The position numbers and the translations under genes were made by a program. A stretch of DNA of 63,854 nt, filler included, from Basidiobolus meristosporus CBS 931.73 (Eukaryota; Fungi; Basidiobolomycota): assembly GCA_002104905.1 (NCBI GenBank). It is 3 parts of 3 records of this genome, joined end to end, with 100 filler letters (N's around TTAATTAATTAA, not from the genome) between each part and the next. Parts side by side here need not be neighbours in the genome. Positions count along the whole stretch, not along the records: positions 1 to 17,266 come from MCFE01001097.1; 2 more parts are not named here. The stretch is one strand, 5' to 3'. Shown piece by piece: positions 1 to 19,836 of the stretch. The notes beneath the pieces are model-generated. The model was not told the DNA's origin and did not search any database. It saw nothing but the letters and a program-made list of their open reading frames with translations. Every line of letters starts with the position of its first letter. Positions within the stretch are counted from its first letter, which is position 1.

Positions 1-143
1 AATACTGAATCTTACCATCTACGATCACCTTTCTGCCTCCGGCTGATGACCAAGTATGGTTACAAGCCAAATAATCGAACTACTTGAACGGGATTTTTAC
101 CAGATTTGCATGTCCCAGCAAAAACCACTTATACACACGAAGA

Positions 144-150
144 TATAAAT
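144..150 (+). promoter_or_regulatory. TATA box (TATAAAT) of copy 1
   Basis: TATAAAT starts 56 nt before the ATG at 200; same spacing in copies 3 and 4. Confidence 0.65.
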
Positions 151-199
151 ACAGACATTTGTAAGTAACAATCATCACAACCCACTTCAAGTCAATACA

Positions 200-783
200 A
201 TGCAACTCACCAAGTCTCTCTTTGCTGCTCTGGCTGCCGCTACTTCCTTCATGGGTGCTGCTACCGCTGCGCCTGTTGACAGCTGCAACGTCCTCACACC
301 AGCTCAACAAAGCCAGATCGGACTTAATGCCTGCTCACCATCCGAAGTTACTGTACAATCGGTGCCTGAACAGATTACCGAATACCTGAACAAGACCCCC
401 TACACTGTTGGTGTCTCCGACTTCATTACCGGTGCCAACTTGATTGGCTGCAAGAAGGAGGCAGTAGCCTCACTGACCTGTACGAAGCCTCGTACAACTA
501 CTACAACTACAACCAGTGCTACAACTTCGAGACAGCCACCGATATGCAGGTCTACATCACCTATGGACAGTCGGACGAGGCCGGACTCTACTGCTACTAC
601 AGCAACTGGAACTGCTATGGCGAGGAGGTGTGCATCAAGAACAATGGCAACACCATTGTTCCAGTATCTGACGATGTCCGCAAGACCGGAATCAAGAGCA
701 CGATGCTGAAGAAGTTCCATGACAGTATCAATGATGCTGTATCCGACGAGGCGCCCGAGAATGCCATCTCATGGGTGTATTAG
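200..783 (+). pseudogene. Secreted Cys/Tyr/Asn-rich protein family, copy 1, with a 1-nt frameshift
   Basis: ORF 200-709 matches copies 3/4 up to ...NLIG; ORF 544-783 supplies the matching C-terminus (MQVY...AISWVY*). Copy 1 reads GGCTGCAA at ~446-453 where copies 3/4 read GGCTTGCAA, so one T is missing. Could be a real pseudogene or a sequencing indel. Confidence 0.8.
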
Positions 784-2917
784 ATATTGCTCGGGAGTGC
801 TTCGTACACTTATTGTAAATGACATGATAGAAATAAAGTATTTGCATAGAAATGAAAGTCAGTATTTCCGCTATACCTTCGTGCATTAATGAGCAAGTAG
901 AGGACATTTTTGTCCACATCCGAGTTTATGTTGTTCAAAGGATGAATATGACCAAGTATCTATCACAGAATTATGGAGTTTCGCTCCAGAAAATGCTAAT
1001 TGAAAATGACGATCAGGCATTATTTCCACTGGCGGATTTGAATATATTCGCTTGAGACAATCTGCATATTCGGCACTCAAAATCATCGAATTTGCTCAGG
1101 CTATATCGATGATGTAACCAGGACTAAATAAAGTATTAAGGGAGCAGACGAACATTATTGGGCGGAGTCGGTAGGATTTAAATTCTCTCAGCGAAACCCA
1201 TCAGTCTTAGTGTGATCATTTTGCCGTTTGATACAACATTGTTAAGTTAAAGGCTTTGCCCCCACTTGATTGAAATGAGAAATATTAGGAATCTTCGAGC
1301 ATGTTCTGTTTGCGTTTTCATCTATGTACACCTGCCAAAGGGTTTGATACTCGCAATAGTGCACAATATTATTACTATCGAGCTCCCGATGAGAATCAGT
1401 TTTTTCTGTGATAGGTCTATTGGTTGTTAAATGCCTAATCAGGCCCTTTTTTATCCACCTGTAAGCATGGAGTGTCGCTTATCTTGTACAAAATTGATAT
1501 TTATTAACCACACCTCCTTCTTTCTCATGGGTCTACTAACTTCCTGGAGAGTGTTGATAGAAAACTGTGCAGCGGCACCTATCTATCGGACGTGCATGTG
1601 GCTTACTGCGATTCTCGGACTATATCTTGGTGAATTTGGGTGTACAACACTAATGGATTCAACATTTGATTAATAGCTGAAGATTTGGAGATCTATATAG
1701 CAGAATATACTTCCAATTTTTTGAACAAAGCCCCTTATATTTTCCGCTTCACCTGATTCTAAGCATATTCTATCTTACAGGACGGAAGCACGAGTGTATT
1801 ATGATCATCCAAAAATTCCCACAATGGTAATCCGCCTCTAGATTCCATAATCCAAAGACATCAACGAATTAATATAAAACGCATAGATACGTTGTCGCTA
1901 CAAAGATAAGCCAATCTAGTGAAGTTGAGAAACCAACCAGTTACATAATCTTAAGTATCCGGGTTTACGGTTCCGGAAAATCCAATTGATATTCCTTTTC
2001 CAGGATCGCGCCATCCATTTATGCTTGAAGAAAATCTCGGCATAGTATAAAATTTCGGGGAAGCCTACCAGGAGGCAGGTCCCACGGTTGACTTCCAAAA
2101 GCCTCACAAAACTGATTTAGACATTCAGATAGATGGTAATGAGAATACTCAGACTCTGTAAGCGACATCTAACAACCATTTCAGGCGATTATAGATTATT
2201 CCGGTAACCATAGCGCTCGAATAAAGTAGTGTGAGGATATTGCATATTGGGAAATGTGAGCTAGCTATCACTCACCCTCCACACTGGCTTTCGGAAAATC
2301 ACAGGACTGCCCGCATGCATTGTTAATCTAGACATCTAAAAATATGCCGACCGTTTTCGGACTGGAAGCGAGTGCAGGTAGTCCAGATACCCGAACTGAA
2401 CCATTAGAGCGTTGGGTTAGTTTATAAGTTCTGCCATAATGCAGCATGTCGAAAATACTGGAAGTAAGATTTCAACCGAGTCTAGAACATGGAATAAGAC
2501 AAACTTTGTTTATCAGGCCTCATCTTTATTACAAGTTACCATATAGAGCTACTACAATTTTCCAGGTTACGAACCGCATTGCATGCGGAAGTAGGGTCAT
2601 TGGGGGTATTGAGTGCATGCCGAAATCATATGGAGACCCAGCTGGCTGATGAAGCTGTTTCTCTAGCTTCAGTCGGGAGTATCTTCAACTTGATTTTAGT
2701 AATGAGCTGTTCAAGATGACGTAGAATAGGTTATTGACTCGATGATAATACTGAATGTCACAAAACGCAACCAGATATACTAAATCCAGATCAAGCAATT
2801 ATAACAATCGGGGAAAATACATATAATAGATATTATTCCCTGTTATTTACCATGAGATATGTTACGTAATATTCAATGATTGAAGATCATCAGTGGTAAC
2901 TTTGAGGGGCGCCTATA

Positions 2918-3085
2918 TATGGCGAGGAGGTGTGCATCAAGAACAATGGCAACACCATTGTTCCGGTATCTGACGATGTCCGGAAGACAGGAATCAAGAG
3001 CACAATGCTGAAGAGGTTCCATGACAGTATTGATACTGATGTACCTGACGAGGCACCCAAGAATGCCATCTCATGGGTGTATTAG
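2918..3085 (+). pseudogene. 3' fragment (copy 2) of the secreted protein family
   Basis: TATGGCGAGGAGGTG...TGGGTGTATTAG is essentially identical to the last ~55 codons of copies 3/4; there is no 5' part. Confidence 0.85.
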
Positions 3086-4367
3086 ATATTGTCCGAGTGT
3101 GTTTTGTACACTCATTGTAAATGATATAACAGAAATAAACCCGCTGAATAAAATCTAAGTTTGAGGTCTCCATAGCATCAATTATGTGCATCATTACATG
3201 CGATCAGACGTAAACTCACATTCACGTTCGAGTTCACGCTGATTGAAAAGGATCGATGTTGTGCGAATACCTGTCAATACAGTAAACAATATCTGATCCA
3301 AAAGATCCTAATTGAAACCGATTTTCAGTTAACATTTGGGGGTAGAGCTGAACCAGAATAGGGGTACGGTTTTATCCACATCCGAGTTCTCGTTGGTTGG
3401 AAAGGAGTGTGATTATCCGAATCCGTATTCCAGAATTGCGGAATTCCTGTTCGGGAGACTGTTAGTTGTGTATGACAATCAGACAGCACTTCCTATTTTG
3501 GCTTAGATATTGCGCATTTGGAGGGAAATCCTCAAATTTGGCACTCAAAATCACCAGTGTATGTGCAAAAAATAGGCCAAGTCGAAGAATTGGTTGAATG
3601 GTACGAGCACCCATTCAAGTTGGTCTGCAGAAGTTCTCAAGCTACTATAAACGAATGTTGAATAATTGAAATAATATCAAAATTTCGGACGGTATTTCCA
3701 TGCTTGAGTACAATTATTTTGGAAAAATATATATGAGATGTCTGGAAGTAGTTCTGTGATTATCTGGAAAATATTCCTCTCATGTTGGAGGTATGTGATT
3801 GAATATAGATTAGACTATTTTGGATTCCTCTGGCCTCCCGTAGTCGCCATAAATGAATAGAAATGGGCAAATAGCTTGGCACAAAACACCGCCATTTTTA
3901 GTAACGAGCAGGCATTGAGCCTTCTTTATCCCCCCAAAATGTCCTAGGCAATAGCCGCGCTTAATTCTTTCTTATGGAGCCAATAATTTTCGAGAGGGTA
4001 CTGATATTGAAAAAGTCTGATTCTGTGGGTTGGAGTTTCGGCAAATGTTCTAGTAGTTTCGCTTCCACTCCAACTTTCAGCAGGAGAGTCTCGCTGATAG
4101 TCAAAATAATGATATTTTCGAAGCTGGTGCTTGTAGTATTGACGTGGTAAGCATGTTATGAGAAGTACAGGGATAAATCCAACAATACGAAATTTCAAGT
4201 AAATATTGATTATAATCAGATGCCTGGAATAGTGCCTATATCTGCGATCACTTCTTTGCCTTCTACTGATTACCAAGTATAGCTATTCATCTGTATATAG
4301 AAGTTACTTCACACGAATAGTTACGGATTTGCGCACCCTAGTAGGCTAAGTGAGCCATACATAAAGA

Positions 4368-4374
4368 TATAAAT
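4368..4374 (+). promoter_or_regulatory. TATA box (TATAAAT) of copy 3
   Basis: 56 nt upstream of the ATG at 4424. Confidence 0.65.
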
Positions 4375-4423
4375 ACCGACTTTTGTACATAACAATCATC
4401 ACGGTCTACTTCAAGATAATATA

Positions 4424-5008
4424 ATGCAACTCTCAAGGTCTCTCTTCGCTGCTCTGGCTGCCGCTACTTCCTTTATGAGCGCTGCTACCGCTGCGCCTGT
4501 TGACAGCTGCAACGTCCTTACACCAGTTCAACAAAGCCAGATCGGACTCAATGCCTGCTCACCATCCGAAGTTACTGTCCAATCCGTGCCTGAACTGATC
4601 ACCGAATACCTCGACAAGACCCCCTACACTGTTGGCGCATCTGATTCCATCACCAACGCCAACCTGATTGGCTTGCAAGAAGGAAGCACCAGCCTTACCG
4701 GCCTGTACGAAGCCTCGTACAACTACTACAACTACAACCAGTGCTACAACTTCGAGACAGCCACCGATATGCAGGTCTACCTCACCTTTGGACAGTCGGA
4801 TGAGGCCGGACTCTACTGCTACTACAGCAACTGGGGCTGCTATGGCGAGGAGGTGTGCATCAAGAACAATGGCAACACCATTGTTCCGGTATCTGACGAT
4901 GTCCGGAAGACAGGAATCAAGAGCACAATGCTGAAGAGGTTCCATGACAGTATTGATACTGATGTACCTGATGAGGCACCCAAGAATGCCATCTCATGGG
5001 TGTATTAG
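4424..5008 (+). CDS. Secreted protein of unknown function, 194 aa, copy 3
   Basis: Intact intronless ORF. Signal-peptide-like N-terminus MQLSRSLFAALAAATSFMSAATA|APVD; 6 Cys; YNYYNYNQCYNF segment; C-ending codon bias. Confidence 0.9.
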   Translation: MQLSRSLFAALAAATSFMSAATAAPVDSCNVLTPVQQSQIGLNACSPSEVTVQSVPELITEYLDKTPYTVGASDSITNANLIGLQEGSTSLTGLYEASYNYYNYNQCYNFETATDMQVYLTFGQSDEAGLYCYYSNWGCYGEEVCIKNNGNTIVPVSDDVRKTGIKSTMLKRFHDSIDTDVPDEAPKNAISWVY

Positions 5009-6934
5009 ATATTGCTCGGGAGTGCTTCATACACTCATTGTAAATGACATAGTAGAATAAAGTAATTGAGTAGAAATGAAAGTTAATATTACTGCACATT
5101 TTTGGTAATGGAATGGAGCCTATGGTTATTAGGAGTCTTGACAATTGTAGGGGCAGGTTGTGTAATGCGTAATATAGTAGACAACATATACTCAGCACCT
5201 TGAGTTGTGCGAAGTTAGAGAATGCTGAAAAGTACTTGTGGAATCATTTCTGAAGCATCTCACACATACCACCAGTCAGTATAGTAATAGATTGTGACAC
5301 TCATATGTTTTGTATACCCCTATAGTAGCCCGGTATCGATAAAGATGGTAATGTAGCTTGGCAGGAATCCCTACTCTGATCATCAGGATCTGAATACACA
5401 CGCTACCTAGTTCCTCTAGTAGGCTACTGAAAGGGTTTGATATACCGAATGTTGCAACATCAAGACAATTCTAGACGCACACATATCCTTGTAAAGCTTA
5501 CCTGGTTAATGTCCACACATCCCTCCTTCGTATCTCACTACTATTTTGCCTCGCTTAAACTTCTAAGCGAGTTTCGAAATGCGGTCGAATGGGAATTACC
5601 AAATAATCTTTTACTTTATTACTGATTTTTTAAAGTTCTATGAGTGGGACTTGTGAGAAGGGTCTAGCACGTTCAATATTGTGTTATCTTCTAGCAAACC
5701 CTAAGATTCTCAAAGGATATCGACGCACTATCAGAATGCGTGATTATATATTGTGGAATACACTTGAGCTTAATATTAGCATTTTCTTACATGCTACTCT
5801 GACAATTAAGCCTTCATCCATATAATTCTCAAAAGCTTTCTTCTCTTCTATGCCAATTGAAAATCCTGCGATGAGGATGTGTGTATTATACAGAATAGAG
5901 ATACGGGTATATTCGACTTGAATGAAAGATTTTCCGAAAAGCAGCATCGCAGGAGTTCCCAACGCTTTGATAATAGAAAGAAATGCGTTGAGCAGTACAT
6001 GTGCAAATATGTTTATTAAAGTAATACTCAGCCTAATGGGTCGCGAACAGAATGGACTCCTTTATCTTATCGGAATTTGAATTGCATCAAAAGGAGGGCC
6101 GATAATCTGACTCACGGCCTCGGATCTGTAGACCCAGAAAGCCGAATAGTAATCGCCTCGATCGGTGGCTAGCCTTCGACCTGCTCGAAGAATATTTCAA
6201 CATTTCACGTATGATTTCAGTGATGCTTACTAGGAGGTGGGATTCGCCTCTGGAAGCCACCAACATTTTTTAGGATATTTAATTACAAGACAGCGGGAAC
6301 GAATCGGGTGTTTAGACTAACTTTATATACCACCATTGATATGCATATTTGGATGAAGCATCACAAGCACATTTCACACCTAGAGAACGGATAATTGGCT
6401 AATCTAACCAGTCATGTATTGCATATTTTCCAAATGCTAAATTATTTAGCGTTACATACTTGATTTGCGCCTCAACATTAAAATCAATGGAAAATCACAA
6501 GCCATTTTAGATTAACCATTTGGACATAGATAGATGTTTCCAGCGCGTGGTTGACAGTTCCCGAGCACTTATTATAATTTTTGGTTCCATAAGAATTCTG
6601 CGAAACTTTGAGCGCTAGGTTTGTTGATGGTATTCCAAAAACTGATTGCAGGATTTCAATGTAGTCCAGAACCATGGAATAGGTACAAACTGTTGCCCCG
6701 TAGAGAATCTCACTCCTATGCTTAATCTGTAAATCGAGCCACTTCAATCGGTACCAAGTATTCTACTGAATATTTAGCTATTGTAATTTATTATCCGTAG
6801 CCTTGGTAGTGGTCATTTACCTCTCATTCGTTACCAAGCGTAATTCTTGGTCAGTTATTAGGTGTTATTTGAACACGCCATTTCTAGGATTTGCTTCTCA
6901 TAATATATACTATCAGATAAGGTACACGCAAACA

Positions 6935-6941
6935 TATAAAT
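6935..6941 (+). promoter_or_regulatory. TATA box (TATAAAT) of copy 4
   Basis: 56 nt upstream of the ATG at 6991, although the leader sequence has diverged. Confidence 0.65.
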
Positions 6942-6990
6942 ATCACCTCTCATTCAAATAATTCAACCCAACCTACCTCCAACTGACGAT

Positions 6991-7575
6991 ATGCAAATCT
7001 CCAAGTCTCTCTTCGCTGCTTTGGCTACCGCTACCTCCCTCTTGGGTTTTGCGACTGGTGCTCCGGTTGATTGTTGCGACGGTCTTACACAAGAACAACA
7101 GAGTCAAATTGGGCTAAATGCTTGTTCATCATCCGATGTTGTAATTCAGTCTGTGCCTGAACTGATCACCGAATACCTCGACAAGACCCCCTACACTGTT
7201 GGTTCCTCCGATTCCATTACCAATGCTAACTTGATTGGCTTGCAAGAAGGAAGCACCAGCCTCACCGGCCTGTACGAAGCCTCGTACAACTACTACAACT
7301 ACAACCAGTGCTACAACTTCGAGACAGCCACCGATATGCAGGTCTACCTCACCTTTGGACAGTCGGATGAGGCCGGACTCTACTGCTATTACAGCAACTG
7401 GGGCTGCTATGGCGAGGAGGTGTGCATCAAGAACAATGGCAACACCATTGTTCCGGTATCTGACGATGTCCGGAAGACAGGAATCAAGAGCACAATGCTG
7501 AAGAGGTTCCATGACAGTATTGATACTGATGTACCTGACGAGGCACCCAAGAATGCCATCTCATGGGTGTATTAG
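6991..7575 (+). CDS. Secreted protein of unknown function, 194 aa, copy 4 (divergent N-terminus)
   Basis: Intact ORF. First ~53 aa diverge from copy 3; from QSVPELITEY onward it is almost identical. Confidence 0.9.
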   Translation: MQISKSLFAALATATSLLGFATGAPVDCCDGLTQEQQSQIGLNACSSSDVVIQSVPELITEYLDKTPYTVGSSDSITNANLIGLQEGSTSLTGLYEASYNYYNYNQCYNFETATDMQVYLTFGQSDEAGLYCYYSNWGCYGEEVCIKNNGNTIVPVSDDVRKTGIKSTMLKRFHDSIDTDVPDEAPKNAISWVY

Positions 7576-8064
7576 ATATTGCTCGGGAGTGCTTCATACA
7601 CTCATTGTAAAGGTCGCAATTGTCATTATTCAAATGTATTTCTTATTGTAACTGTATAGAATAAAATTAAATCATACTGTTATTAAGTATCAACTTGCCT
7701 TTCTCTACCCGGGTGAATCCTTGCTTCCCCTTCAAACGGACGTGACCTTACAAATACACTAAAGCTCAACTAGCCCTAAGCATAACTAATACAACAAGTA
7801 GATGGATGTTGTATTGCTGTAGTATCATTTACAAGGACAAAACAGTCAGCCAGACGCTTTAGTGGCGTAGCACCATTTACAGGATGAAACATTTGTGCAT
7901 CACGATCCAACCTTTTTGGCTGACAGGGTAAGTACAGGAACGTAGCGATTGATACCTCTCTGATAAAGATGGATGTCACAGACGTCTCTAGCGGTATGGT
8001 ACTTTACGCAAGCAATATCTTTGCTGGGGTCAAGATCCACCTTAGTAATGTACATTTAGAATTG

Positions 8065-8261
8065 GGTGGGGGGAGAGAGTCACCAACAGATGAAATCTCT
8101 ATCTTAGTCAAAAAAAAAGAGGCCATCGTTACTGCTGTAGCTCTGATACACAAGTGTATAGCTGAGGGGAGTTGGTAGGCAGGTTATTAAGAAGAAATGA
8201 TAACCATTCAGTGCTCAAGACAAGAGTCAGTAGGATGATGGGTAGCAAGAGTGGTAAGAAC
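8065..8261 (-). mobile_element. Degenerate 3' end of the telomeric LINE family
   Basis: GGGTGGGGGGAGAGAGTCACCAACAGATGAAATCTCTAT...AAAGAGGCCATCGTTACTGCTGTAGCTCTGATAC...CAGTGCTCAAGAC aligns with 11281-11470, with many substitutions. Confidence 0.8.
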
Positions 8262-8592
8262 TGTTGTAAAAACCTTAGTGATATCTCATGTGATTGGGAA
8301 AAGTAGATTTTGCAATTTCCACTTGATGATTTATTGAATGTGAATTAGAATTACACTTTTACATGGTCTTGCCAAAACAAACATGTAGAATGTGCTTAGA
8401 AAGGCCCCAAGAGCATGTGTGCAAAGCCCAGGGCTATTTAGACAGCTTTAAGAAACTTCACATCCTGTGTACCTGATATCTTGGTGAAAATATTCTAAAT
8501 AGATCCTGACAATGAACTAGGACAGAATTCTCTGAGAACTGTAGACTATGATCTAGGTGACTAAGCTAGGTGAGTGCTTTGGTATAATAACA
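8262..8592 (-). mobile_element. Diverged solo LTR of copia family A
   Basis: TG...CA ends; its reverse complement aligns along its length with LTRs 20665-21013 and 24998-25347. No clean TSD. Confidence 0.75.
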
Positions 8593-9551
8593 AAACCCAA
8601 AACACTCACACAACTAAATATTCACATTGATTAGTCATTAGAGTTGTTGTGCATCAACATTTAAAACTTAGCCAATTTTACTCCGTTTGAAAATCTAGTA
8701 CCCTAACTGATTTTCCCTAACCCAAACATAACAAATCCCAGTTACAGTTTATTTTATCCCACCTCAGAATCTATTTTTAGCTATCACACCTGATCTATTT
8801 TCAAATGGTCATTACGTTATCAACCTATCTGCCAGGCCTTCCCAGGTGATTAGTCATCTGAGATCTATCCAACCATGGTGCAGTTGCCAAGACATCAGTT
8901 GATTGATGATGTAATTCTCATTTATCTTATGCACCTATGAACACCCAAATTGATTTCAATCAATCCAGTCCCTTGGCGCTTACTAATTCAACTTGATCAG
9001 AAAAGTATAAATAAAGTTTACTGAACCTTTTGGTTTAGTGTGTGTCTCAACGAAATTAAGATTCTGTCTCAGCAAAAATAAGAATCCAACAGTTCCGTTC
9101 TAGTTTCTATCCAAGCCTAGTATATCTAGCACTCCAAAGAACACCAAGCCTAGCCTGCCTAGCAAACAAATATCATTGTCTTTATAGCCAACCCAGCTAT
9201 ATCCAAGACCAATATTAGATCAGAATCTTTCTGCTAATATTTCCGCCACTCTCTGACAATTCTAAGATTCTGCACTTAATTGTCCCTTTGGTTCAGTTAA
9301 ACCATTCAAGAAGTTTTATTACACTTTCTCTTGGATACAACAAGAGTGATCTAAGATACTCAAATTTGTCTCTTGCCAAGCCCCTAAGGCTTGGTGAATA
9401 TGTCCGCAATCAGTTCATATGTGAGACTGTAAGCTAAGTTGACCAAGTTGATCTCTATATACTTCCATATGAAAATTAAATGTAATGAATATATCAAGGG
9501 CCATCACAGGATTTAAATCCCATGACTAAGAGGAATTAATGCCATTGGTAC

Positions 9552-10070
9552 TGTTGAAAAAATTTTTAATTCCACCTAAATATTCACCTAACTAAGTCAC
9601 TTAGATCATTACCTTCAAATCCTGTAGAATACTGACCAAATTCCTTGTCTGGATTTACTTGGAATATTTTCACCAAAATACCAGCCACCCAGAACATGAG
9701 AAATTCTCAAAGCTGTCCCAACAGCCCCAAGCTTTGCACACATGTTCTTGGGACCTTCCTTAACCTATTCTGCATGTTTGTTATGCCAAGACCATGTAAA
9801 AGTATAAATACTACTTTTACATTGAATAAATCATTAAGTGAAAACCACATAATCTACATGTCCTCCCAATCACTTCCAATATGTCCAAGACTCTTACAAC
9901 AGGTTTTGAGCCCCAAGCTGTCACTCTCTTCAATGTCTACTACTGCTACTACTGGAATTTTTCCCTCTGCTGAAAAGTTGGATGGATCTCATTACCAAGT
10001 GTGGAAGGTGAAGATGAAGATGCTGCTACAAGAAAGAGGCCTTTGGGTTACTGTCATGGGCGAAGAATGC
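9552..10070 (+). mobile_element. Copia family A 5' LTR (9552-9901), PBS and gag start, truncated by telomere addition
   Basis: LTR TGTTGAAAA...CTTACAACA; copia-type PBS GGTTTTGAGCCCC; gag GIFPSAEKLDGSHYQVWKVKMKMLLQERGLW..MGEEC, matching 21050-21180; then abruptly TTAGGG. Confidence 0.9.
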
Positions 10071-10082
10071 TTAGGGCTAGGG
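10071..10082 (+). repeat. Interstitial telomeric seed TTAGGG CTAGGG
   Basis: Directly at the copia breakpoint. Confidence 0.8.
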
Positions 10083-10100
10083 TAGGGGGAGACAGTCACT

Positions 10101-11277
10101 TAGGGGGGGGGAGACAGTCACCAACAGGTGAAATCTTTATTTCAGTTGAAACAAAGAAGCCAGCGTTACTGTTGTAGCTTTGATACAAGAGTGTGTAGCT
10201 GAGGGGAATTTGTAGGTAAGTTAATAAGAAGTGATGATAGTTCTTCAGTGCTCAAGACACTGTTCAGTGGGAAGGGGGGTAGCAAGAGAGGTAAGAATGA
10301 CTTGTGAACAACATTAATGAGGGGAATGTGATAAGGATTGATATTCATCATAAAGGGAGTGTGCTGCTGCAGATATTGCTGCCAAAGGTTTGTCAAGTAC
10401 TTCAGGTAGGCCAGCTTGGGTTTTTCTGACTGCAGAATATAGTGAGCAAACTTCTTGACTTCAGGATCTCCAAGTATAGTTCTCCAGCAGGAGCCAGGTG
10501 TAGTGTGGTGTGTTCTCTTCCAGGCCTTAATCAGTGGGTTGTTGCAGTTGTGAAGTCTGAGGTATAATCTGGTTCTAAGGTAGAGAAGTCTGATCTTATA
10601 GGGCATAAACCCAAAAGCACCAAGAATAGCATGTCCGTAGGGGCATTCAGGCAAATGAGGCACCAAGGAGGTAATGCACCATACTGCAAACTTGTCAAGC
10701 TTAGTGCAGTCTCTAGAAGTAAGAGAGAGAAGTGGTAAGCCAAATTCCAGGACAGGGAAGACAAACTGCTTGAGTAGAAGGAGGCAGCTGGGAGCTGAAG
10801 TAGTAGGAGGAGTAACAACCAGTAGCTTGTGGAGTGCCTGTCTTGCCAGGATAATTCTCTTCTTCAGGTGCGCTCCAGAGTCTAGTCCAGTAGGAAGGAA
10901 AGGAAAGCCAAGATATGTAGCAGAAACCTGAGCAGGTAGAGTGGAGTTCTCCAAGTTGATGGGAGAGCCCAAAGGTACTGTCTTTGCAATGGAAAGCTGG
11001 AGATTATTCTTCTGCAGATACTGGTGGATGGTCTGGGAGTCTTGTTGCACATTGGAGGAGGATATTCTGATGTCATCAGCAAAGAGAGTAACCAGGCAGT
11101 CAGCTGGGAGTCTTGGGAAATCATTCAGGAAGATGGCAAACAGTATAGGACCAAGCACAGAGCCTTGAACCACTCCATTAGGAACTGTGAACACAGCTGA
11201 TTGCTCACCTGGGTGCAGAATTCTTGCTTGTGGATCCAGAAACAGAGACCTGACAAGGAGGGTGAGAGAGGTACTGG
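10101..11277 (-). mobile_element. 5'-truncated copy (A) of telomeric LINE, RT C-terminal part
   Basis: ORF 10166-11194 (GVVQGSVLGPILF, FADD) is nearly identical to the end of ORF 11343-14096. Homology stops at GTACTGG (11277), followed by GTTAGGG. Confidence 0.93.
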
Positions 11278-11342
11278 GTTAGGGGGGGAGACAGTCACCA
11301 ACAGGTGAAATCTTTATTTCAGTTGAAACAAAGAAGCCAGCG

Positions 11343-14096
11343 CTACTGTTGTAGCTTTGATACCAGAGTGTGTAGCTGAGGGGAATTTGTAGGTAAGTTA
11401 ATAAGAAGTGATGATAGTTCTTCAGTGCTCAAGACACTGTTCAGTGGGAAGGGGGGTAGCAAGAGAGGTAAGAATGACTTGTGAACAACATTAATGAGGG
11501 GAATGTGATAAGGATTGATATTCATCATAAAGGGAGTGTGCTGCTGCAGATATTGCTGCCAAAGGTCTGTCAAGTACTTCAGGTAGGCCAGCTTGGGTTT
11601 TTCTGACTGCAGAATAAATTCAGCAAACTTCTTGACTTCAGGATCTCCAAGTATAGTTCTCCAGCAGGAGCCAGGTGTTGTGTGGTGTGTTCTCTTCCAG
11701 GCCTTAATCAGTGGATTGTTGCAGTTGTGAAGTCTGAGGTATAATCTGGTTCTAAGGTAGAGAAGTCTGATCTTATAGGGCATAAACCCAAAAGCACCAA
11801 GAATAGCATGTCCGTAGGGGCATTCAGGCAAATGAGGCACCAAGGAGGTAATGCACCATACTGCAAACTTGTCAAGCTTAGTGCAGTCTCTAGAAGTAAG
11901 AGAGAGAAGTGGTAAGCCAAATTCCAGGACAGGGAAGACAAACTGCTTGAGTAGAAGGAGGCAGCTGGGAGCTGAAGTTGTAGGAGGAGTAACAGCCAGT
12001 AGCTTGTGGAGTGCCTGTCTTGCCAGGATAATTCTCTTCTTCAGGTGTGCTCCAGAGTCTAGTCCAGTAGGAAGGAAAGGAAAGCCAAGATATGTAGCAG
12101 AAACCTGAGCAAGTAGAGTGGAGTTCTCCAAGTTGATGGGAGAGCCCAAAGGTACTGTCTTTGCAATGGAAAGCTGGAGATTATTCTTCTGCAGATACTG
12201 GTGGATGGTCTGGGAGTCTTGTTGCACATTGGAGGAGGATATTCTGATGTCATCAGCAAAGAGAGTAACCAGGCAGTCAGCTGAGAGTCTTGGGAAATCA
12301 TTCAGGAAGATGGCAAACAGTATAGGACCAAGCACAGAGCCTTGAACCACTCCATTAGGAACTGAGAACACAGCTGATTGCTCACTTGGGTGCAGAATTC
12401 TTGCTTGTGGATCCAGAAACAGAGACCTGACAAGGAGGGTGAGAGAGGTACTGGAGAAGCATTGCAACTTGGACCAAAGCAGATTTCTGTCAACTGAATC
12501 AAAGGCCTTAGTAATATCAAACAGAACAGAGGGATACTTGCACTGGAGAGAGTGATCTTGGCTAAGTATGACTGCATATTCCAAGGAGAGGCCAGGAACA
12601 AAGCCAAACTGTGCAGGATGAAACTTGAGAGAGTCAGAGTAGAGCTCCTTAGCAAGCAGAAGCTCAAACACCTTTCTGCAGGTGGGCAGCAGAGATATTG
12701 GCCTGTAGGAGCTAGGATCCAGGTGCTTTCCTTTACCCTTGTACAGTGGCAGAACATTTGCAAAGGACCATTCCTCAGGAGTAGAAAGCTGGGCTGAGCA
12801 TTGCTGAAACAGTGGAAGCAGAAGTGCAGACATGGCCTTGGGACTAGTCTTCAGAAGCTCATAGGAGATTGTGTCCACACCTGGAGCAGTAGAGTTAGGA
12901 AGCCTCTTGAGCACATTATGGATTCTTCTTTGATCAAGTGCAAGTGGGATGGGCAGAGTCTTGAAGTCAGGATGAAAGCCAGGAGTTGAGTACTGCTTTG
13001 TAGAGAAGAAGATGTTAGCCAGCTGTTGTGTTGAAGGTAACTTCCTGGAAGAGGGCCTCATTGCCCTGTAGAGTCTTGATACTGTTCTTGTTATAGAGTT
13101 GGAAGATTGCAGAGGCAAGGAACTCATAATATGATCCCAGAGCTGAGTATGCAGAGTGTGGTGAATTGCCTTGGAGTGGTGTATTGCTGTCAGGAGGAGG
13201 TTCTCTGTTTTTGGGTTAGGGAAGCTCAGGTAGCTTTGTTGCAGGGCTGAAACAATGGATTCCCATTTTCTTGAGGTAACCGCAGTAGTCTTGCATGGCA
13301 GTGAGAGGGAGGCAGACACCAGAATCAGATGCTTCACAAAGAGCCAGGCAAAGTTGAGATCATCTGGCAGAGAAAGTAGCAAACTGGCAAGCTTCAAGTA
13401 GTTCCCAAAGTCTTTCTTCTGATTCTTGGTAGCTTTGTGGGTGAGCACAGTAAGTTTTGGCAGCTTCCTCTTCACAACTGGTTGCATAGAAAGGGACCAG
13501 GCTGGGTGGTCAGAGGCTCTCAAGGATCCTAGCTCAGCTCCAGAGAATTGCTTAACTTCATTCACAAAGTAGAGGGCAGCAGCAGAAGGGCAGATCCAGT
13601 CAACACATCTTTTCTCAGATTGAGCACCTAGTGCTAGCAGGTGGCTTTCTCTCAGGAAGTTCAGTAGGAATGTAGACCTTGGCTTCATTCTTGCAGTCAG
13701 AGTAGTCTTGTTCTCAGGATGGGGAATGTTGAGATCTCCAAGCAAGATAACAGGTGTTGATATAGATTGTTGGTATTGCTGAACCTTCTGGCATATAACT
13801 TGCACTTCCTGAAGGGCTAGACTTGGAGGCAGATAGCAGAGCACCAGACTGATAGTTGGCAACTGGAGAGCAGCACAGTAAGGGGAGTAAAGAGGAACAC
13901 AGAGCTGAGGAGTATTGATGGTAGAAGAGATGAAGCAGATAGAGGAGGTATTCTTTGTTCTAGGAGTAGAAAAGCAATATAGATTAGTCAAAAATATAGA
14001 GGGTAGCTGGACATCAATCAAACACAGGAGGGAAAATCTTGAAAGAAGTCTCTCTAGAGTTGGTCTTGATGGCTGTATGCTGTTGCAGTTAAGCAA
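11343..14096 (-). CDS. LINE ORF2: APE-type endonuclease plus reverse transcriptase, 917 aa
   Basis: EN motifs LNCN, CYLPP, LLGDLN, VDWI, ASDH. RT motifs APGVD, SYRPISLL, QFGF, FDITKAFDSV, GVVQGSVLGP, FADD, YLG. No RNase H seen. The ORF track starts on TTG, not ATG. Confidence 0.95.
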   Translation of the reverse strand: MLNCNSIQPSRPTLERLLSRFSLLCLIDVQLPSIFLTNLYCFSTPRTKNTSSICFISSTINTPQLCVPLYSPYCAALQLPTISLVLCYLPPSLALQEVQVICQKVQQYQQSISTPVILLGDLNIPHPENKTTLTARMKPRSTFLLNFLRESHLLALGAQSEKRCVDWICPSAAALYFVNEVKQFSGAELGSLRASDHPAWSLSMQPVVKRKLPKLTVLTHKATKNQKKDFGNYLKLASLLLSLPDDLNFAWLFVKHLILVSASLSLPCKTTAVTSRKWESIVSALQQSYLSFPNPKTENLLLTAIHHSKAIHHTLHTQLWDHIMSSLPLQSSNSITRTVSRLYRAMRPSSRKLPSTQQLANIFFSTKQYSTPGFHPDFKTLPIPLALDQRRIHNVLKRLPNSTAPGVDTISYELLKTSPKAMSALLLPLFQQCSAQLSTPEEWSFANVLPLYKGKGKHLDPSSYRPISLLPTCRKVFELLLAKELYSDSLKFHPAQFGFVPGLSLEYAVILSQDHSLQCKYPSVLFDITKAFDSVDRNLLWSKLQCFSSTSLTLLVRSLFLDPQARILHPSEQSAVFSVPNGVVQGSVLGPILFAIFLNDFPRLSADCLVTLFADDIRISSSNVQQDSQTIHQYLQKNNLQLSIAKTVPLGSPINLENSTLLAQVSATYLGFPFLPTGLDSGAHLKKRIILARQALHKLLAVTPPTTSAPSCLLLLKQFVFPVLEFGLPLLSLTSRDCTKLDKFAVWCITSLVPHLPECPYGHAILGAFGFMPYKIRLLYLRTRLYLRLHNCNNPLIKAWKRTHHTTPGSCWRTILGDPEVKKFAEFILQSEKPKLAYLKYLTDLWQQYLQQHTPFMMNINPYHIPLINVVHKSFLPLLLPPFPLNSVLSTEELSSLLINLPTNSPQLHTLVSKLQQ

Positions 14097-14111
14097 CAGA
14101 ACTTCAGGTAG

Positions 14112-14750
14112 TCAGGCAGAGGTTGTAGCTTCTTCAGAGGCAGCATTAACAATGTGACCTGCAGAGTCCCAGAGCTCTTCAAATGGTGCATCACTTAAGT
14201 CAGCAAGGAGGGAAATGGCATGGTTCTTGAGGAAGTATGCCACATCATAGGAGGGGGCTTGTCTCTTGATGGCAGCAAAGAAAGACAGAATGGCAACATG
14301 GGCTGGAGGCTTGTTGAACTGTAGAGAGTCAGAGGATTCAGATTCTTCAGGCACTATCTGGAAGTCAGTTTTCAGCCAGTTAAGGTTCTTCTCCACAAAG
14401 GCAACAAATGGGTCAGCAATGTTTTGGTCAAGAATAACCTCCAGAATCTTCCCTTTTCTCCAGGCCAGGTTGACAATTCTTGAGAGCTGAATATTGCATG
14501 CCTTGAGTGCTTTCCTGATGTTGGAAATGGGGGTCCAGGGAACTTGCTTCAAGTACACCACAGTCCAGGTAGAAGCTGGTGGTAGGTTTGCTGGGGGCTT
14601 GTAAGTCCTTCTGTGTTGCAATGGAGCTGCAGTAGTCAGATTGGAGTCCACATTCTCAGTAGAAGGTTTTCTTGATGTGTCTTGCTGAAGAGTACTGGAG
14701 CTGGATGTGCTGATAATTCTTGCCAGAACCTTGCCTGCATAAGTCTGAGG
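14112..14750 (-). CDS. LINE ORF1 (nucleic-acid-binding/gag-like), N-terminally truncated
   Basis: Called ORF 14112-14651; the frame continues open upstream (...QTYAGKVLARIISTSSSS...ENVDSN) to the junction. Homologous to the ORF at 14883-15611. Confidence 0.8.
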   Translation of the reverse strand, partial: PQTYAGKVLARIISTSSSSTLQQDTSRKPSTENVDSNLTTAAPLQHRRTYKPPANLPPASTWTVVYLKQVPWTPISNIRKALKACNIQLSRIVNLAWRKGKILEVILDQNIADPFVAFVEKNLNWLKTDFQIVPEESESSDSLQFNKPPAHVAILSFFAAIKRQAPSYDVAYFLKNHAISLLADLSDAPFEELWDSAGHIVNAASEEATTSA

Positions 14751-14882
14751 TAGGGGGGGGAGGGAAAGTCACCAAAGTAGGTGAAATCTTTATTTGATTT
14801 CAGACAAGTCTAACAACAAATAAAGAAGCCAGCTGGGAATAGAAAATTCCCAAAGTAAACACTAAGTTGAATATGAATAAAT

Positions 14883-15611
14883 CTAAGCTAAAGTTAAGGC
14901 AGTATCCCAAAGTACACTGGAGTTCAGGTTCATGGGGGAGTGAAGTAGATAAGCTTGAGATATATAATAATCTTTGAGGAAGTGGGTAACAGCAGGTGAA
15001 GGGGAGTTTTTGATAAGTGAAGTGAATCTTGAGAGCAGAGATTCCTCTAATGAGAAGGTCTTGTAAACTGGAGAATCAGGAAACTCTTGAAAGGCATGGT
15101 CAGTAGGTTCCCAGTAAAACTGGTCAGAGACATTTTGAGAGAACTCTTTAGCAATACTTTTGTCAAGTACTACCTCCAGAGTGTGATGGTTGATAAATCT
15201 CATGTTAACAATCTTGGATAAATTGTAACCTTGTTGCTTGAGATACATCCTATGCTCAGATATAGGAATAAACTCCACATTGGCAAAGTAGCAGACAGCC
15301 CAGTCAGTAGCAGGAGGTAAATCAGAAGTGGCAGGAAACTTTCTTTTAGTCTTGGGAGGAGCAGCAGGATGTCTTGAGGAAGCAGGAACAGGCTTTTTGA
15401 CAGCTTCAGAGTAGGAAGAGTGAGCAAGAGCAGATGATTCTTGGGGAGTCTTGTTGACAGGAAGAGTTGGCACAGGGACTATAGATTCTTGCAGATCAGA
15501 GAAGGCAGAAAACAGCTTTTGAACTTGTTTCTTGAGTAAAGCATTTTCAGCTTCAACAAGTGCAAGCCTTTCCTCAAGGAAGGAAATCTGAAGGGAATGG
15601 AGTGAAGGCAT
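14883..15611 (-). CDS. ORF1 paralog, 242 aa from the ATG at 15611, with N-terminal coiled coil
   Basis: MPSLHSLQISFLEERLALVEAENALLKKQVQKL (heptad-like). Core LPPATDWAVCY..V..IPISE.R..LK....LSKIVN.......LEVVLD..IA..F aligns with the LINE ORF1 at about 30/81 identities (hand count). Confidence 0.85.
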   Translation of the reverse strand: MPSLHSLQISFLEERLALVEAENALLKKQVQKLFSAFSDLQESIVPVPTLPVNKTPQESSALAHSSYSEAVKKPVPASSRHPAAPPKTKRKFPATSDLPPATDWAVCYFANVEFIPISEHRMYLKQQGYNLSKIVNMRFINHHTLEVVLDKSIAKEFSQNVSDQFYWEPTDHAFQEFPDSPVYKTFSLEESLLSRFTSLIKNSPSPAVTHFLKDYYISQAYLLHSPMNLNSSVLWDTALTLA

Positions 15612-15651
15612 AAGAAATAAGAAGAAGAGGGTAGGATGGGGTGGGTGGGTG

Positions 15652-16479
15652 GGAAAATTAGCAGGGAGAAGAGAAGGAAGGAGCAAAAATTCCAGAAGTC
15701 AGAATTTATAGATGGATGGACAAGGGTAGATGGATGGATTATTCCTGGGTTAGGAAAATTAGCAGGGAGAAGAGAAGGAAGGAGCAAAAATTCCAGAAGT
15801 CAGAATTTATAGATGGATGGACAAGGGTAGATGGATGGATTATTCCTGGGTTAGGAAAATTAGCAGGGAGAAGAGAAGGAAGGAGCAAAAATTCCAGAAG
15901 TCAGAATTTATAGATGGATGGACAAGGGTAGATGGATGGATTATTCCTGGGTTAGGAAAATTAGCAGGGAGAAGAGAAGGAAGGAGCAAAAATTCCAGAA
16001 GTCAGAATTTATAGATGGATGGACAAGGGTAGATGGATGGATTATTCCTGGGTTAGGAAAATTAGCAGGGAGAAGAGAAGGAAGGAGCAAAAATTCCAGA
16101 AGTCAGAATTTATAGATGGATGGACAAGGGTAGATGGATGGATTATTCCTGGGTTAGGAAAATTAGCAGGGAGAAGAGAAGGAAGGAGCAAAAATTCCAG
16201 AAGTCAGAATTTATAGATGGATGGACAAGGGTAGATGGATGGATTATTCCTGGGTTAGGAAAATTAGCAGGGAGAAGAGAAGGAAGGAGCAAAAATTCCA
16301 GAAGTCAGAATTTATAGATGGATGGACAAGGGTAGATGGATGGATTATTCCTGGGTTAGGAAAATTAGCAGGGAGAAGAGAAGGAAGGAGCAAAAATTCC
16401 AGAAGTCAGAATTTATAGATGGATGGACAAGGGTAGATGGATGGATTATTCCTGGGTTAGGAAAATTAGCAGGGAGAAG
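15652..16479 (+). repeat. Tandem array of 101-bp units (8 complete plus ~20 bp)
   Basis: Identical 65-aa ORFs recur at 101-bp spacing (15716, 15817 ... 16322). Unit GGAAAATTAGCAGGG...ATTCCTGGGTTA. Confidence 0.97.
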
Positions 16480-16529
16480 GGTTAGGGTTAGGGTTAGGGT
16501 TAGGGTTAGGGTTAGGGTTAGGGTTAGGG
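16480..16529 (+). repeat. Interstitial telomeric tract, GG(TTAGGG)8
   Basis: Read directly, between the ORF1-only element and the SINE. Confidence 0.97.
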
Positions 16530-17053
16530 TAGGGGGAGGAAAGTCACCAAGTGGTGAAATCTTTATTTACTTATGACAAGTATCTAAAGAAGCCATGTTA
16601 ATCTGAAGTTATTCCTAGAAAGCTAGGTCTGAGAGATATCTTCCTGGTAAGCCAGGTCTGAGGGTTGAGAAGCTGAGTGGTACTATATTTCCTAGTTAGC
16701 TAGGTCTGAGAGAGGTTTCCTGGAAAGCCAGGCCTGAGAAGTGAGAATCTGAATATATCTGAGCTAAGTTATACTGGTTTGCGGTAGCTGGATTGTGGCC
16801 GGAATGGCCAGTAGACTGGGGGAACTGAGATGAATTTCTGGGCGATCACTGGCCAAATTTACTAGGCAAATCTGGCCAATTAGCATTTCAAGGATTTCAG
16901 CCAATCAGAGCCTTTACTTTGCCCGATGGTTGATCAAGCCATCTCCCAATGAGCACACATCAATTTATTAATCAAATTTTGCTGGATCCAGGATTTGAAC
17001 CCACAACCATGGGTATGGAAGGGTTAGGGATAACCACAAGGCTAAGTGTTCTT
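16530..17053 (-). mobile_element. tRNA-headed SINE-like element sharing the LINE 3' end
   Basis: Minus-strand A-box-like TAGCCTTGTGG (17044-17034) and perfect B-box GGTTCAAATCC (17001-16991), 32 nt apart. No TTTT seen on the transcribed strand. 3' module at 16530-16600. Confidence 0.8.
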
Positions 17054-17266
17054 GGTTAGGGTTAGGGTTAGGGTTAGGGTTAGGGTTAGGGTTAGGGTTA
17101 GGGTTAGGGTTAGGGTTAGGGTTAGGGTTAGGGTTAGGGTTAGGGTTAGGGTTAGGGTTAGGGTTAGGGTTAGGGTTAGGGTTAGGGTTAGGGTTAGGGT
17201 TAGGGTTAGGGTTAGGGTTAGGGTTAGGGTTAGGGTTAGGGTTAGGGTTAGGGTTAGGGTTAGGGT
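17054..17266 (+). repeat. Terminal telomere, (TTAGGG)35
   Basis: 35 perfect units from 17056 to the contig end; G-rich strand runs 5'->3' toward the end. Confidence 0.99.
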
Positions 17267-19534: not shown

Positions 19535-19836
19535 AGACTTGTTCTGTTGGATAGTGCCACATTGAGCCATGAGTGCCATGGGTATTGAGTACCAGATGCA
19601 TATCTACAATCCTTTAGTGCTCTTCCACATCTTGTACAACATTGACCTAAAAAAAAAGGTCAAAAAATGGATTTTCTCCATCACAATGAGTGAAACACAG
19701 GGGCTGCTTTGCATGAAGATGCAGATCTATGTTTCACACTCTGTGGCCAAGTGTAGGCTCACTTGGCCTCCCTGGCACACTATGGCATCATTTGGCACTC
19801 ATGGCTCAATGTGGCACTATCCAATGGAACAAGTCT
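19535..19836. mobile_element. 302-bp MITE of the PHIS/Pangu-like family
   Basis: TIRs AGACTTGTTC...GGAACAAGTCT; TSD ATT/ATT. Confidence 0.85.

Follow-up and report, generated by a model that had tools for sequence, protein, structure and literature searches.

The part of the window analysed here (positions 1-17266) is the complete contig MCFE01001097.1 (17,266 bases) of assembly GCA_002104905.1 from Basidiobolus meristosporus CBS 931.73, a fungus placed taxonomically in the phylum Basidiobolomycota. Its distal part is an array of retroelements that lack long terminal repeats (non-LTR retroelements), joined by telomere-type sequence: a stub and two copies, LINE A and LINE B, of a long interspersed nuclear element (LINE), an element with the first open reading frame (ORF) only (ORF1-only, or gag-only), and a non-coding element resembling a short interspersed nuclear element (SINE-like). 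Telomere tracts and tandem monomers were called with Tandem Repeats Finder (Table 1). Every recognisable unit proximal to the cap is in minus-strand orientation, its 3′ end facing the centromere and its 5′ end facing the tip, and the G strand of the cap runs 5′ to 3′ to the contig end. The original prediction, made from the sequence alone, had described these five units of uniform polarity beneath a TTAGGG cap; all five were recovered, in the polarity described, and the cap consists of perfect repeats throughout. It had also taken LINE A and LINE B for separate events, which agrees with the 15 substitutions and no gaps found over 1173 bp by BLAST: at least two different template RNAs are needed. 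The interstitial tract separates the 3′ end of the SINE-like element from the ORF1-only element, whose 5′ monomer is truncated there. The degenerate repeats at the proximal border of the array mark the first healing point of a truncated copia-like gag.

Two further chromosome ends of the same assembly, L012 (MCFE01001276.1) and L010 (MCFE01001018.1), were reached via paralogues of the window's subtelomeric genes, so that three ends, about 48 kb in all, were read. L012 is capped by about 30 TTAGGG repeats. The ORF2 of its 3.67-kb LINE is intact and differs from that of LINE B by 20 synonymous and 13 non-synonymous changes, and fragments of the window's ORF1-only family occur at both ends (L012 5306-5692, L010 18712-18905). 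About 16 units were counted at the three ends, all in one polarity. Since the same elements recur in the same polarity at two further ends, chance is excluded as an explanation of the arrangement. Unit order and truncation points differ among the three ends, which implies that the arrays were built independently; an assembly artefact was ruled out because the arrays recur on three contigs with differing unit order.

Table 1. Array units, telomere tracts and neighbouring features of the window and of the other chromosome ends
Feature	Position	Strand	Remarks
Terminal telomere cap, (TTAGGG)35.5	window 17054-17266	+	Tandem Repeats Finder: (GGTTAG)35.5, 100% matches
SINE-like non-coding element, ~520 nt	window 16530-17053	-	3′ module common with LINE
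Interstitial telomere tract, 9.7 TTAGGG repeats	window 16478-16534	+	Tandem Repeats Finder
101-bp monomers, 8.2 perfect tandem units	window 15652-16479	-	5′ part of ORF1-only element; Tandem Repeats Finder
ORF1-only (gag-only) element	window 14750-16479; body 14750-15651	-	ORF 14883-15611
LINE B	window 11277-14752	-	5′-truncated ORF1, intact ORF2, 3′ untranslated region, shared module ending C7-TAAC
LINE B ORF1, open to junction	window 14115-14749	-	5′-truncated; in-frame UGA at 14112-14114
LINE B ORF2, 917 aa	window 11343-14096	-	intact
LINE A, 3′ 1.18 kb of LINE B's family	window 10100-11276	-	98.7% identical to LINE B
Stub, last ~17 nt of LINE 3′ end	window 10083-10099	-	GTGACTGTCTCCCCCTA in sense
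Degenerate telomere repeats	window 10070-10084	+	CTTAGGGCTAGGGTA; between stub and truncated copia-like gag
CpG-poor Ty1/copia-like fragment	window 8291-10070	+	gag N-terminus (DUF4219) 9645-10070, cut off by array
Older LINE 3′ end	window 8058-8290	-	79% identical to active family; same hairpin and C-run; paralogous copy L010 10245-10476
Subtelomeric gene family, ~194 aa	window 200-783, 2920-3084, 4424-5008, 6991-7575; L010 940-9762; L012 1354-1938; L013 10001-10585		
Array of L012, inward order	L012		3.67-kb LINE, 176-nt SINE-like, 315-nt LINE, full SINE-like, unrelated insert, 387-nt ORF1-only joined to unique DNA
Array of L010, part 1	L010		non-coding element with 86-bp monomers, telomere repeats, ORF1-only fragment, 1.97-kb LINE
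Array of L010, part 2	L010		complete second ORF1-only family, 45-nt stub (15734-15777), degenerate telomere repeats, truncated copia gag
Non-coding element with 86-bp 5′ monomers	L010 18930-19762		monomers contain GGTTAGGGG and GTTAGGG

A common 3′ module links the LINE with the ORF1-only and short elements. In the RNA it consists of AAAUAAAGAUUUCACC, a loop of 4-6 nt, GGUGA, 5-7 nt, a run of 5-9 C, and UA(A), with a GGCUUCUUU box 20-40 nt upstream; the module can also be written as AAUAAAGAUUUCACC, followed by the loop, GGUGA, 5-9 C and UAA. Among the 25 3′-end matches listed from the window, L010, L012 and relatives in other samples, 20 follow the pattern AAUAAAGAUU(U/A)CACC-loop-GGUG...C(5-9)UA(A). 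There is no A-run that could represent a poly(A) tail at the unit ends, which read C(5-9)TAA(CCC), and target-site duplications, which are not definable at chromosome ends, were not found at the units of the three ends. LINE copies of 3.67, 3.47, 1.97, 1.18 and 0.3 kb and the stubs have one common 3′ terminus and varying 5′ ends. Sharing the 3′ module of a LINE is the usual mark of non-autonomous elements that borrow its reverse transcriptase (RT).

The module extends beyond this genome assembly. Contigs with relatives of the LINE were collected from ENA and Logan assemblies (L002-L009, L043 and L044) and contain five protein clusters 48-80% identical to ORF2 as well as full-length elements of about 5 kb. 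The relatives mostly end in the same way: where the 3′ end is present, the same module is followed by TAACCC(TAA), and some relatives lie head-to-tail with other short elements carrying a variant hairpin. One Logan contig lost its 3′ end to an assembly artefact, ending in the Illumina adapter AGATCGGAAGAGC (L043 3835-3852). When JGI metagenomes were scanned for exact matches to the pattern of the 3′ module, none turned up, and a protein-profile scan of the same metagenomes returned distant LINEs only, short or partial, with 23-52% identity over the best segments and with neither module nor telomere repeats. These data bear on the view that ordinary dispersed LINE and SINE families have piled up in gene-poor subtelomeres, their arrays being spread by recombination or segmental duplication. 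The subtelomeres are indeed paralogous, as a gene family, an old LINE fragment and copia-like sequence are common to the window and L010. However, all units share one polarity, every one of them has the identical 3′ terminus followed by telomere-type sequence instead of poly(A) or target-site duplications, the relatives in other samples likewise end in TAACCC(TAA), and the differing order and truncation points show that the arrays are not duplicated blocks. Such passive accumulation is therefore very improbable.

LINE B is 5′-truncated, as its ORF1 is open right up to the junction. Its ORF2 matches the Pfam family RVT_1 (E 1.9e-25), the best solved-structure matches to the RT being human L1 ORF2p (E about 1e-12), and the FADD box and RT motifs align with those of ORF2s combining an apurinic/apyrimidinic (AP) endonuclease (APE) with an RT. 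The nearest neighbours outside the relatives are arthropod or metagenome ORF2s of this kind, at 25-32% identity. By Pfam, endonuclease families (Exo_endo_phos) reach only sub-threshold scores in the window ORF2, and the full Exo_endo_phos profile is covered by the corresponding part of the relative L008 at a near-threshold E of 7.3e-5; against PDB sequences, the profile of the APE domain reached an E of only about 2. Residues 1-220 of ORF2 were modelled with AlphaFold2 (AF2; predicted local distance difference test score, pLDDT, 72; predicted template modelling score, pTM, 0.76). In a fold search, this model matches AP endonucleases at E about 1e-7 to 1e-6, the TRAS1 endonuclease (1wdu) ranking 6th and the L1 endonuclease (1vyb) 33rd, both at E about 1e-6; the match to TRAS1 is no better than that to cellular APE1. 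Every lineage aligned, down to 48% identity, retains N, Y, D-N, D and S-D-H of the catalytic site, and all have Asp in place of the metal-binding Glu (motif LCLIDV). Taken together, the fold of the model and the aligned catalytic residues place the LINE in the AP-endonuclease type, with the predicted domain N-terminal to the RT, as the original prediction had proposed, and the endonuclease is under conservation. No restriction-like endonuclease (REL) was matched in ORF2: Pfam found only the RVT_1 and Exo_endo_phos families, and the C-terminal 240 aa give no REL match.

ORF1 and ORF2 share one frame and are separated by a single UGA, in the window as well as in L002, L003/L004, L008, L043 and L044. 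The context GC(C/A)-UGA-CU(A/C/U) is kept in all seven copies examined, and ORF2 has no AUG ahead of the endonuclease motif LLLNCNS. Together, these three features suggest that programmed readthrough of the stop codon may yield ORF2 fused to ORF1, which would be unusual for a LINE. ORF1 of the LINE has a coiled coil and a conserved C-terminal domain, and the N-terminus of ORF1 in full-length relatives is zinc-knuckle-like.

The ORF of the ORF1-only element encodes 242 aa, modelled as a coiled coil, a β-α-β-β-α-β domain and a helical C-terminal domain; a long N-terminal helix and then a disordered linker precede the β-α-β-β-α-β domain. Such an order of parts resembles that of LINE ORF1 proteins. 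A fold search with the model gave no significant match (best E 0.04, to generic ferredoxin-like or RNA recognition motif (RRM)-like domains), and a word-indexed homologue search with the protein found nothing. The aligned C-terminal part is 34% identical to LINE ORF1, and identity to the second ORF1-only family, that of L010, is 47%. No remnant of ORF2 follows the ORF in the window. Homology to LINE ORF1, lack of an ORF2 remnant and the shared 3′ module accord with the ORF1-only partner that had been predicted. The 3′ untranslated region (UTR), which contains the module, ends in C8-TAC (14750-14760). In the sense direction, each of the 101-bp monomers contains CCATCCATCTATAAATT, which is TATA-like, and has TAACCC at its end; the full-length relatives L004 and L044 have a similar CATCCATCC...AAATT motif at their 5′ ends. 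By analogy with mouse L1 5′ UTRs, the monomers may be tandem promoters. The C-rich 5′ leader of the element forms a G-quadruplex motif on the G strand from about 15629, and a GGGGTGGGTGGGTGGG-type motif is conserved in the 5′ leaders of three different non-autonomous elements (15629-15655; L010 about 16700-16716 and 19543-19558). The non-coding element of L010 has a distinct 3′ hairpin, TTGCAC-TTCTT-GTGCAA, followed by AATAAAG, and runs straight into (CCCTAA)3 without a C-run. The system had been predicted to consist of three components; LINE, ORF1-only and SINE-like elements are real and joined by the 3′ module, but membership exceeds three.

The SINE-like element contains no ORF of at least 60 aa on the sense strand of its 519 nt. 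Its 5′ head holds, at 16991-17044, an A box, TAGCCTTGTGG, and 32 nt further on a B box, GGTTCAAATCC, with starts 43 nt apart, in agreement with the RNA polymerase III (Pol III) consensus and with tRNA spacing. This pattern, which was written with the sequence already in view, occurs once in the window and in none of 200 shuffles. On these sequence grounds, a SINE-like element with a putative Pol III-type head is supported. The sole Rfam match for the head in searches at E<=1 and E<=10, SNORD22, was dismissed as chance. A second full-length copy (L012 6435-6953) is 98% identical and has the same 5′ end in a different context, and a third is 5′-truncated (176 nt, L012 7282-7457). Both full-length copies carry CCCTAACCC where the anticodon arm of a tRNA would be (17019-17027 and L012 6918-6926); the motif equals one and a half C-strand telomere repeats and looks like the template of a telomerase RNA. 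The body of the element also contains four direct repeats of ~25 nt (16612-16741), each with the small palindrome CCTAG-N4-CTAGG.

The interpretation favoured here, and considered likely, is that these units belong to a telomere-dedicated consortium of non-LTR retroelements, made up of an autonomous LINE with gag-only and SINE-like partners. From the anatomy of the DNA, the following pathway can be envisaged. The LINE RT would recognise the 3′ module both in cis and in trans, thereby mobilising the partners. The end of the RNA, C-run/UAA(CCC), would pair with the 3′ end of the G strand, and this would prime first-strand cDNA. Target-primed reverse transcription is the established model behind this assumption, and the G-strand 3′-OH is the candidate primer because the polarity of the units makes the cDNA strand continuous with the telomeric G strand. 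Each unit would thus be laid down with its 3′ end toward the centromere, and telomerase-type repeats or the next element would then be added to the new end. That the elements coexist with telomerase is suggested by the perfect TTAGGG tracts.

The junctions provide information on the kind of end that is used. About 8 of 14 contain one telomere repeat or none, and several units are joined to unique or copia sequence via TAA or TAAC alone. Junction sequences vary (TAACCC, TAAG, TACC, TAAC plus unique sequence). Where a longer copy shows the expected continuation of a unit, truncation points often overlap the telomere register: GG in LINE A, TA/GGTA in LINE B, GGGTT at L012 7270 and TA at L010 18905. 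The prevalence of junctions with at most one repeat and the microhomology at truncation points make the evidence lean, though not heavily, toward most additions having used chromosome ends that were critically short, eroded or broken, and not the interior of long double-stranded tracts. At such ends, the pairing partner would be telomerase RNA or the C-run/UAA(CCC) terminus of an element's RNA.

The main alternative is a mechanism like that of TRAS and SART, in which the AP endonuclease nicks the G strand of the telomeric duplex, or of telomere-like sites, at a defined position and the nick serves as the primer. It would account for the APE fold and catalytic residues kept across lineages, for the TRAS1 endonuclease being among the best structural matches, and for units that lie between multi-repeat tracts, such as the SINE-like element of the window (9.7 versus 35.5 repeats) and L012 7454-7477. 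However, the TRAS1 match is not superior to that of the cellular enzyme, and junctions with so few repeats, or leading directly to unique or copia sequence, are hard to obtain by random nicking in a tract of 150-200 bp. Moreover, the G-strand primer ends vary (…TGG, …AGG, …CAC, …GTG, …AAT) and define no single cleavage site, and no leftover of an interrupted element is found distal to any insertion. Nicking as the general route is accordingly regarded as rather unlikely. A further possibility is that arrays arise in single events, with the RT switching templates: from one RNA, either at its 5′ end or at a point within it, the enzyme would move to the 3′ end of another. Non-LTR RTs such as that of R2 are established to jump end to end between templates, and this could explain the very short stubs of 17 nt (window 10083-10099) and 45 nt (L010 15734-15777) as well as the many junctions that carry just the TAA(CCC) of the incoming RNA. 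Yet some junctions contain 3-10 perfect telomere repeats and so need a separate repeat-adding step, the divergence of LINE A from LINE B calls for more than one template RNA, and microhomology in the telomere register fits annealing to DNA ends at least equally well. Formation of the arrays in single events is held to be improbable, more so than nicking; template jumping is seen as a contributor to the stubs and direct junctions.

Several observations weigh against a telomere-dedicated consortium primed at chromosome ends. The copies read come from the three ends only, a small part of a genome of presumably ~89 Mb, and dispersed internal copies are possible. Covariation support for the hairpin is weak: across 12 different ends, 98% of cells of the 5-bp stem are paired, the changes seen are one compensatory (UA to AU) and one G-U, and this result is equalled by 82 of 500 shuffles. 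An AAUAAA lies 35-40 nt before the 3′ terminus of the units, so that the element RNA may be polyadenylated, in which case the details of priming would change. RNA cleavage and polyadenylation right after C(n)UA is one possibility, in which case the UA plus the first A's of the tail would mimic CCCUAA. Furthermore, a purely end-priming element would not obviously need a conserved endonuclease, and its conservation argues for some nicking role; Drosophila TART and TAHRE likewise keep theirs. Lastly, the tRNA SINE of the original prediction stands only in part. The A and B boxes at tRNA spacing and the shared LINE 3′ tail are as described, but no tRNA is recognised in the head by ARAGORN or, at E<=10, by Rfam, no stable cloverleaf is formed (minimum free energy z-score 0.10, no better than shuffled sequence), and no Pol III terminator is evident in the element. 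A tRNA origin of the element is plausible.

Telomere-associated retrotransposons listed in a 2023 survey comprise SART/TRAS, GilM/GilT, Zepp, MoTeR1, Tx1-1_ACar, Athena and the Drosophila elements (PMC10088271), and a 2025 paper assigns the fungal elements MoTeR1, FoTeR and Cnl1, which have restriction-like endonucleases, to a single clade (PMC12857005). Among open-access papers and preprints, no prior description of the present system was found under Basidiobolus, nor in searches for telomeric or target-specific SINEs or for fungal APE-type telomeric elements arranged head-to-tail; the novelty suspected in the original prediction holds for this literature. The Basidiobolus system works most like the Drosophila consortium in its uniform arrays, its gag-only partner and its addition to ends without repeats. 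The Jockey-clade elements HeT-A, TART and TAHRE form head-to-tail terminal arrays with 3′ ends centromere-ward, as seen at the three Basidiobolus ends; they, too, combine a gag-only element with RT-encoding partners that keep the endonuclease, contain 5′-truncated units, and attach to ends without telomere repeats, broken ends included. In contrast to Drosophila, where the elements alone maintain ends that lack telomerase-type repeats, the Basidiobolus units are capped (35.5 and about 30 repeats) and interleaved by perfect TTAGGG, they end in hairpin, C-run and UAA rather than an oligo(A) tail, a SINE-like third partner is present, and the host is a fungus. Bombyx TRAS1 and SART1 (R1 clade) are likewise APE-type LINEs living in telomerase-type repeats, with a 3′ UTR presumably recognised by their own RT and a telomere-complementary RNA 3′ end thought to help annealing. 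However, TRAS and SART occupy one nucleotide position inside long (TTAGG)n, have poly(A), and represent two opposite orientations as two families, whereas in Basidiobolus junction positions vary, most junctions have at most one repeat, poly(A) is lacking, and a single polarity prevails.

MoTeR1/MoTeR2 of Magnaporthe, FoTeR of Fusarium and Cnl1 of Cryptococcus are similar in being fungal telomere-associated non-LTR elements; MoTeR2 is a non-autonomous partner with termini common to MoTeR1, and FoTeR has tandem repeats biased to the 5′ region (PMC12857005). These CRE-clade elements differ in their restriction-like endonuclease located C-terminal to the RT (PMC12857005), as opposed to the predicted N-terminal AP endonuclease of the Basidiobolus LINE, in which Pfam finds no REL, and Basidiobolus adds gag-only and SINE-like partners. 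The Penelope-like elements Athena and Coprina are also chromosome-end elements with 3′ ends complementary to the G-overhang, for which free-end priming has been proposed; they have a Penelope-type RT without endonuclease, in contrast to the LINE-type RT (RVT_1, L1 ORF2p match) and APE domain seen here. Finally, stringent-type pairs of tRNA-derived SINEs and LINEs likewise feature a short non-coding element with A and B boxes and about 45-80 nt of the partner LINE's 3′ end. Unlike in such pairs, the head of the Basidiobolus element is not recognised by tRNA covariance models, there is neither a terminator nor an A-rich tail, and the element has so far been seen only in telomeric arrays. The system thus differs from all those compared in its non-poly(A) hairpin/C-run/UAA tail, its SINE-like partner, its host lineage and the in-frame ORF1-UGA-ORF2 arrangement.

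Telomere-specialised retrotransposons are a textbook case of mutualism between transposon and host, with the well-studied examples coming from insects, and the fungal examples known so far use a restriction-like endonuclease, unlike the Basidiobolus LINE. A more far-reaching proposal can be offered tentatively and is, as a whole, doubtful: that an independently evolved, Drosophila-like consortium in a TTAGGG fungus heals short or broken ends by annealing through C-run/UAA(CCC), includes the first telomere-dedicated SINE-like element with a template-like CCCUAACCC in its head, makes an ORF1-ORF2 fusion by UGA readthrough, and serves as back-up end maintenance beside telomerase instead of being a mere parasite. 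An APE-type LINE with gag-only and SINE-like partners in a culturable TTAGGG fungus would offer a tractable system for studying how such consortia arise and how an RNA 3′ end pairs with a chromosome end. One could also ask there whether, where ends are short or broken, telomerase and the retroelements work together or against each other. The system is further relevant to the idea that telomerase and the RTs of retroelements are linked in evolution.

Proximal to the array, the older LINE 3′ end sits between unique DNA and copia-like sequence in the same polarity as the array and is common to two paralogous subtelomeres; it is probably the relic of a former chromosome end. The counterpart of the copia-like fragment occupies L010 10467-15722, where the gag has a CCHC knuckle. 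The two gags are cut at different points, each being joined to degenerate telomere repeats, which suggests terminal deletions that were then healed. The observed/expected ratio of CpG is 0.02-0.03 in the telomeric array (10071-17053), 0.13 in the copia-like sequence and 0.76 in the gene-bearing part (1-8057). In the relatives L002-L008, L043 and L044, it is 0.00-0.10, and the ORFs are intact. Either selection against CpG or long-term decay of repeats through cytosine methylation is suggested by such loss. That elements otherwise intact have almost no CpG left is, like the in-frame UGA, of interest in its own right. As the sense strand of the elements is G-poor, the telomeric G strand is G-rich across the array (10001-17000; GC skew +0.2 to +0.64). 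G-quadruplex motifs number 11 on the G strand and 0 on the other, with none in the host part.

At L012, an unrelated repeat, AGGGGGTCTGGGGGACGCAGTC..., occurs at 3030-3067 and 5693-6430, one copy lying between units of the telomeric array. The subtelomeric gene family encodes proteins of ~194 aa with an N-terminal hydrophobic leader and several Cys, which match no Pfam family and have homologues only in Basidiobolus meristosporus; among the copies in the window, one has only 176 aa and another is a 3′ fragment. On L013, a large non-ribosomal peptide synthetase gene (1-6335) with condensation, AMP-binding and PP-binding domains occupies the end of a 161-kb contig, about 4 kb away from the family member there.

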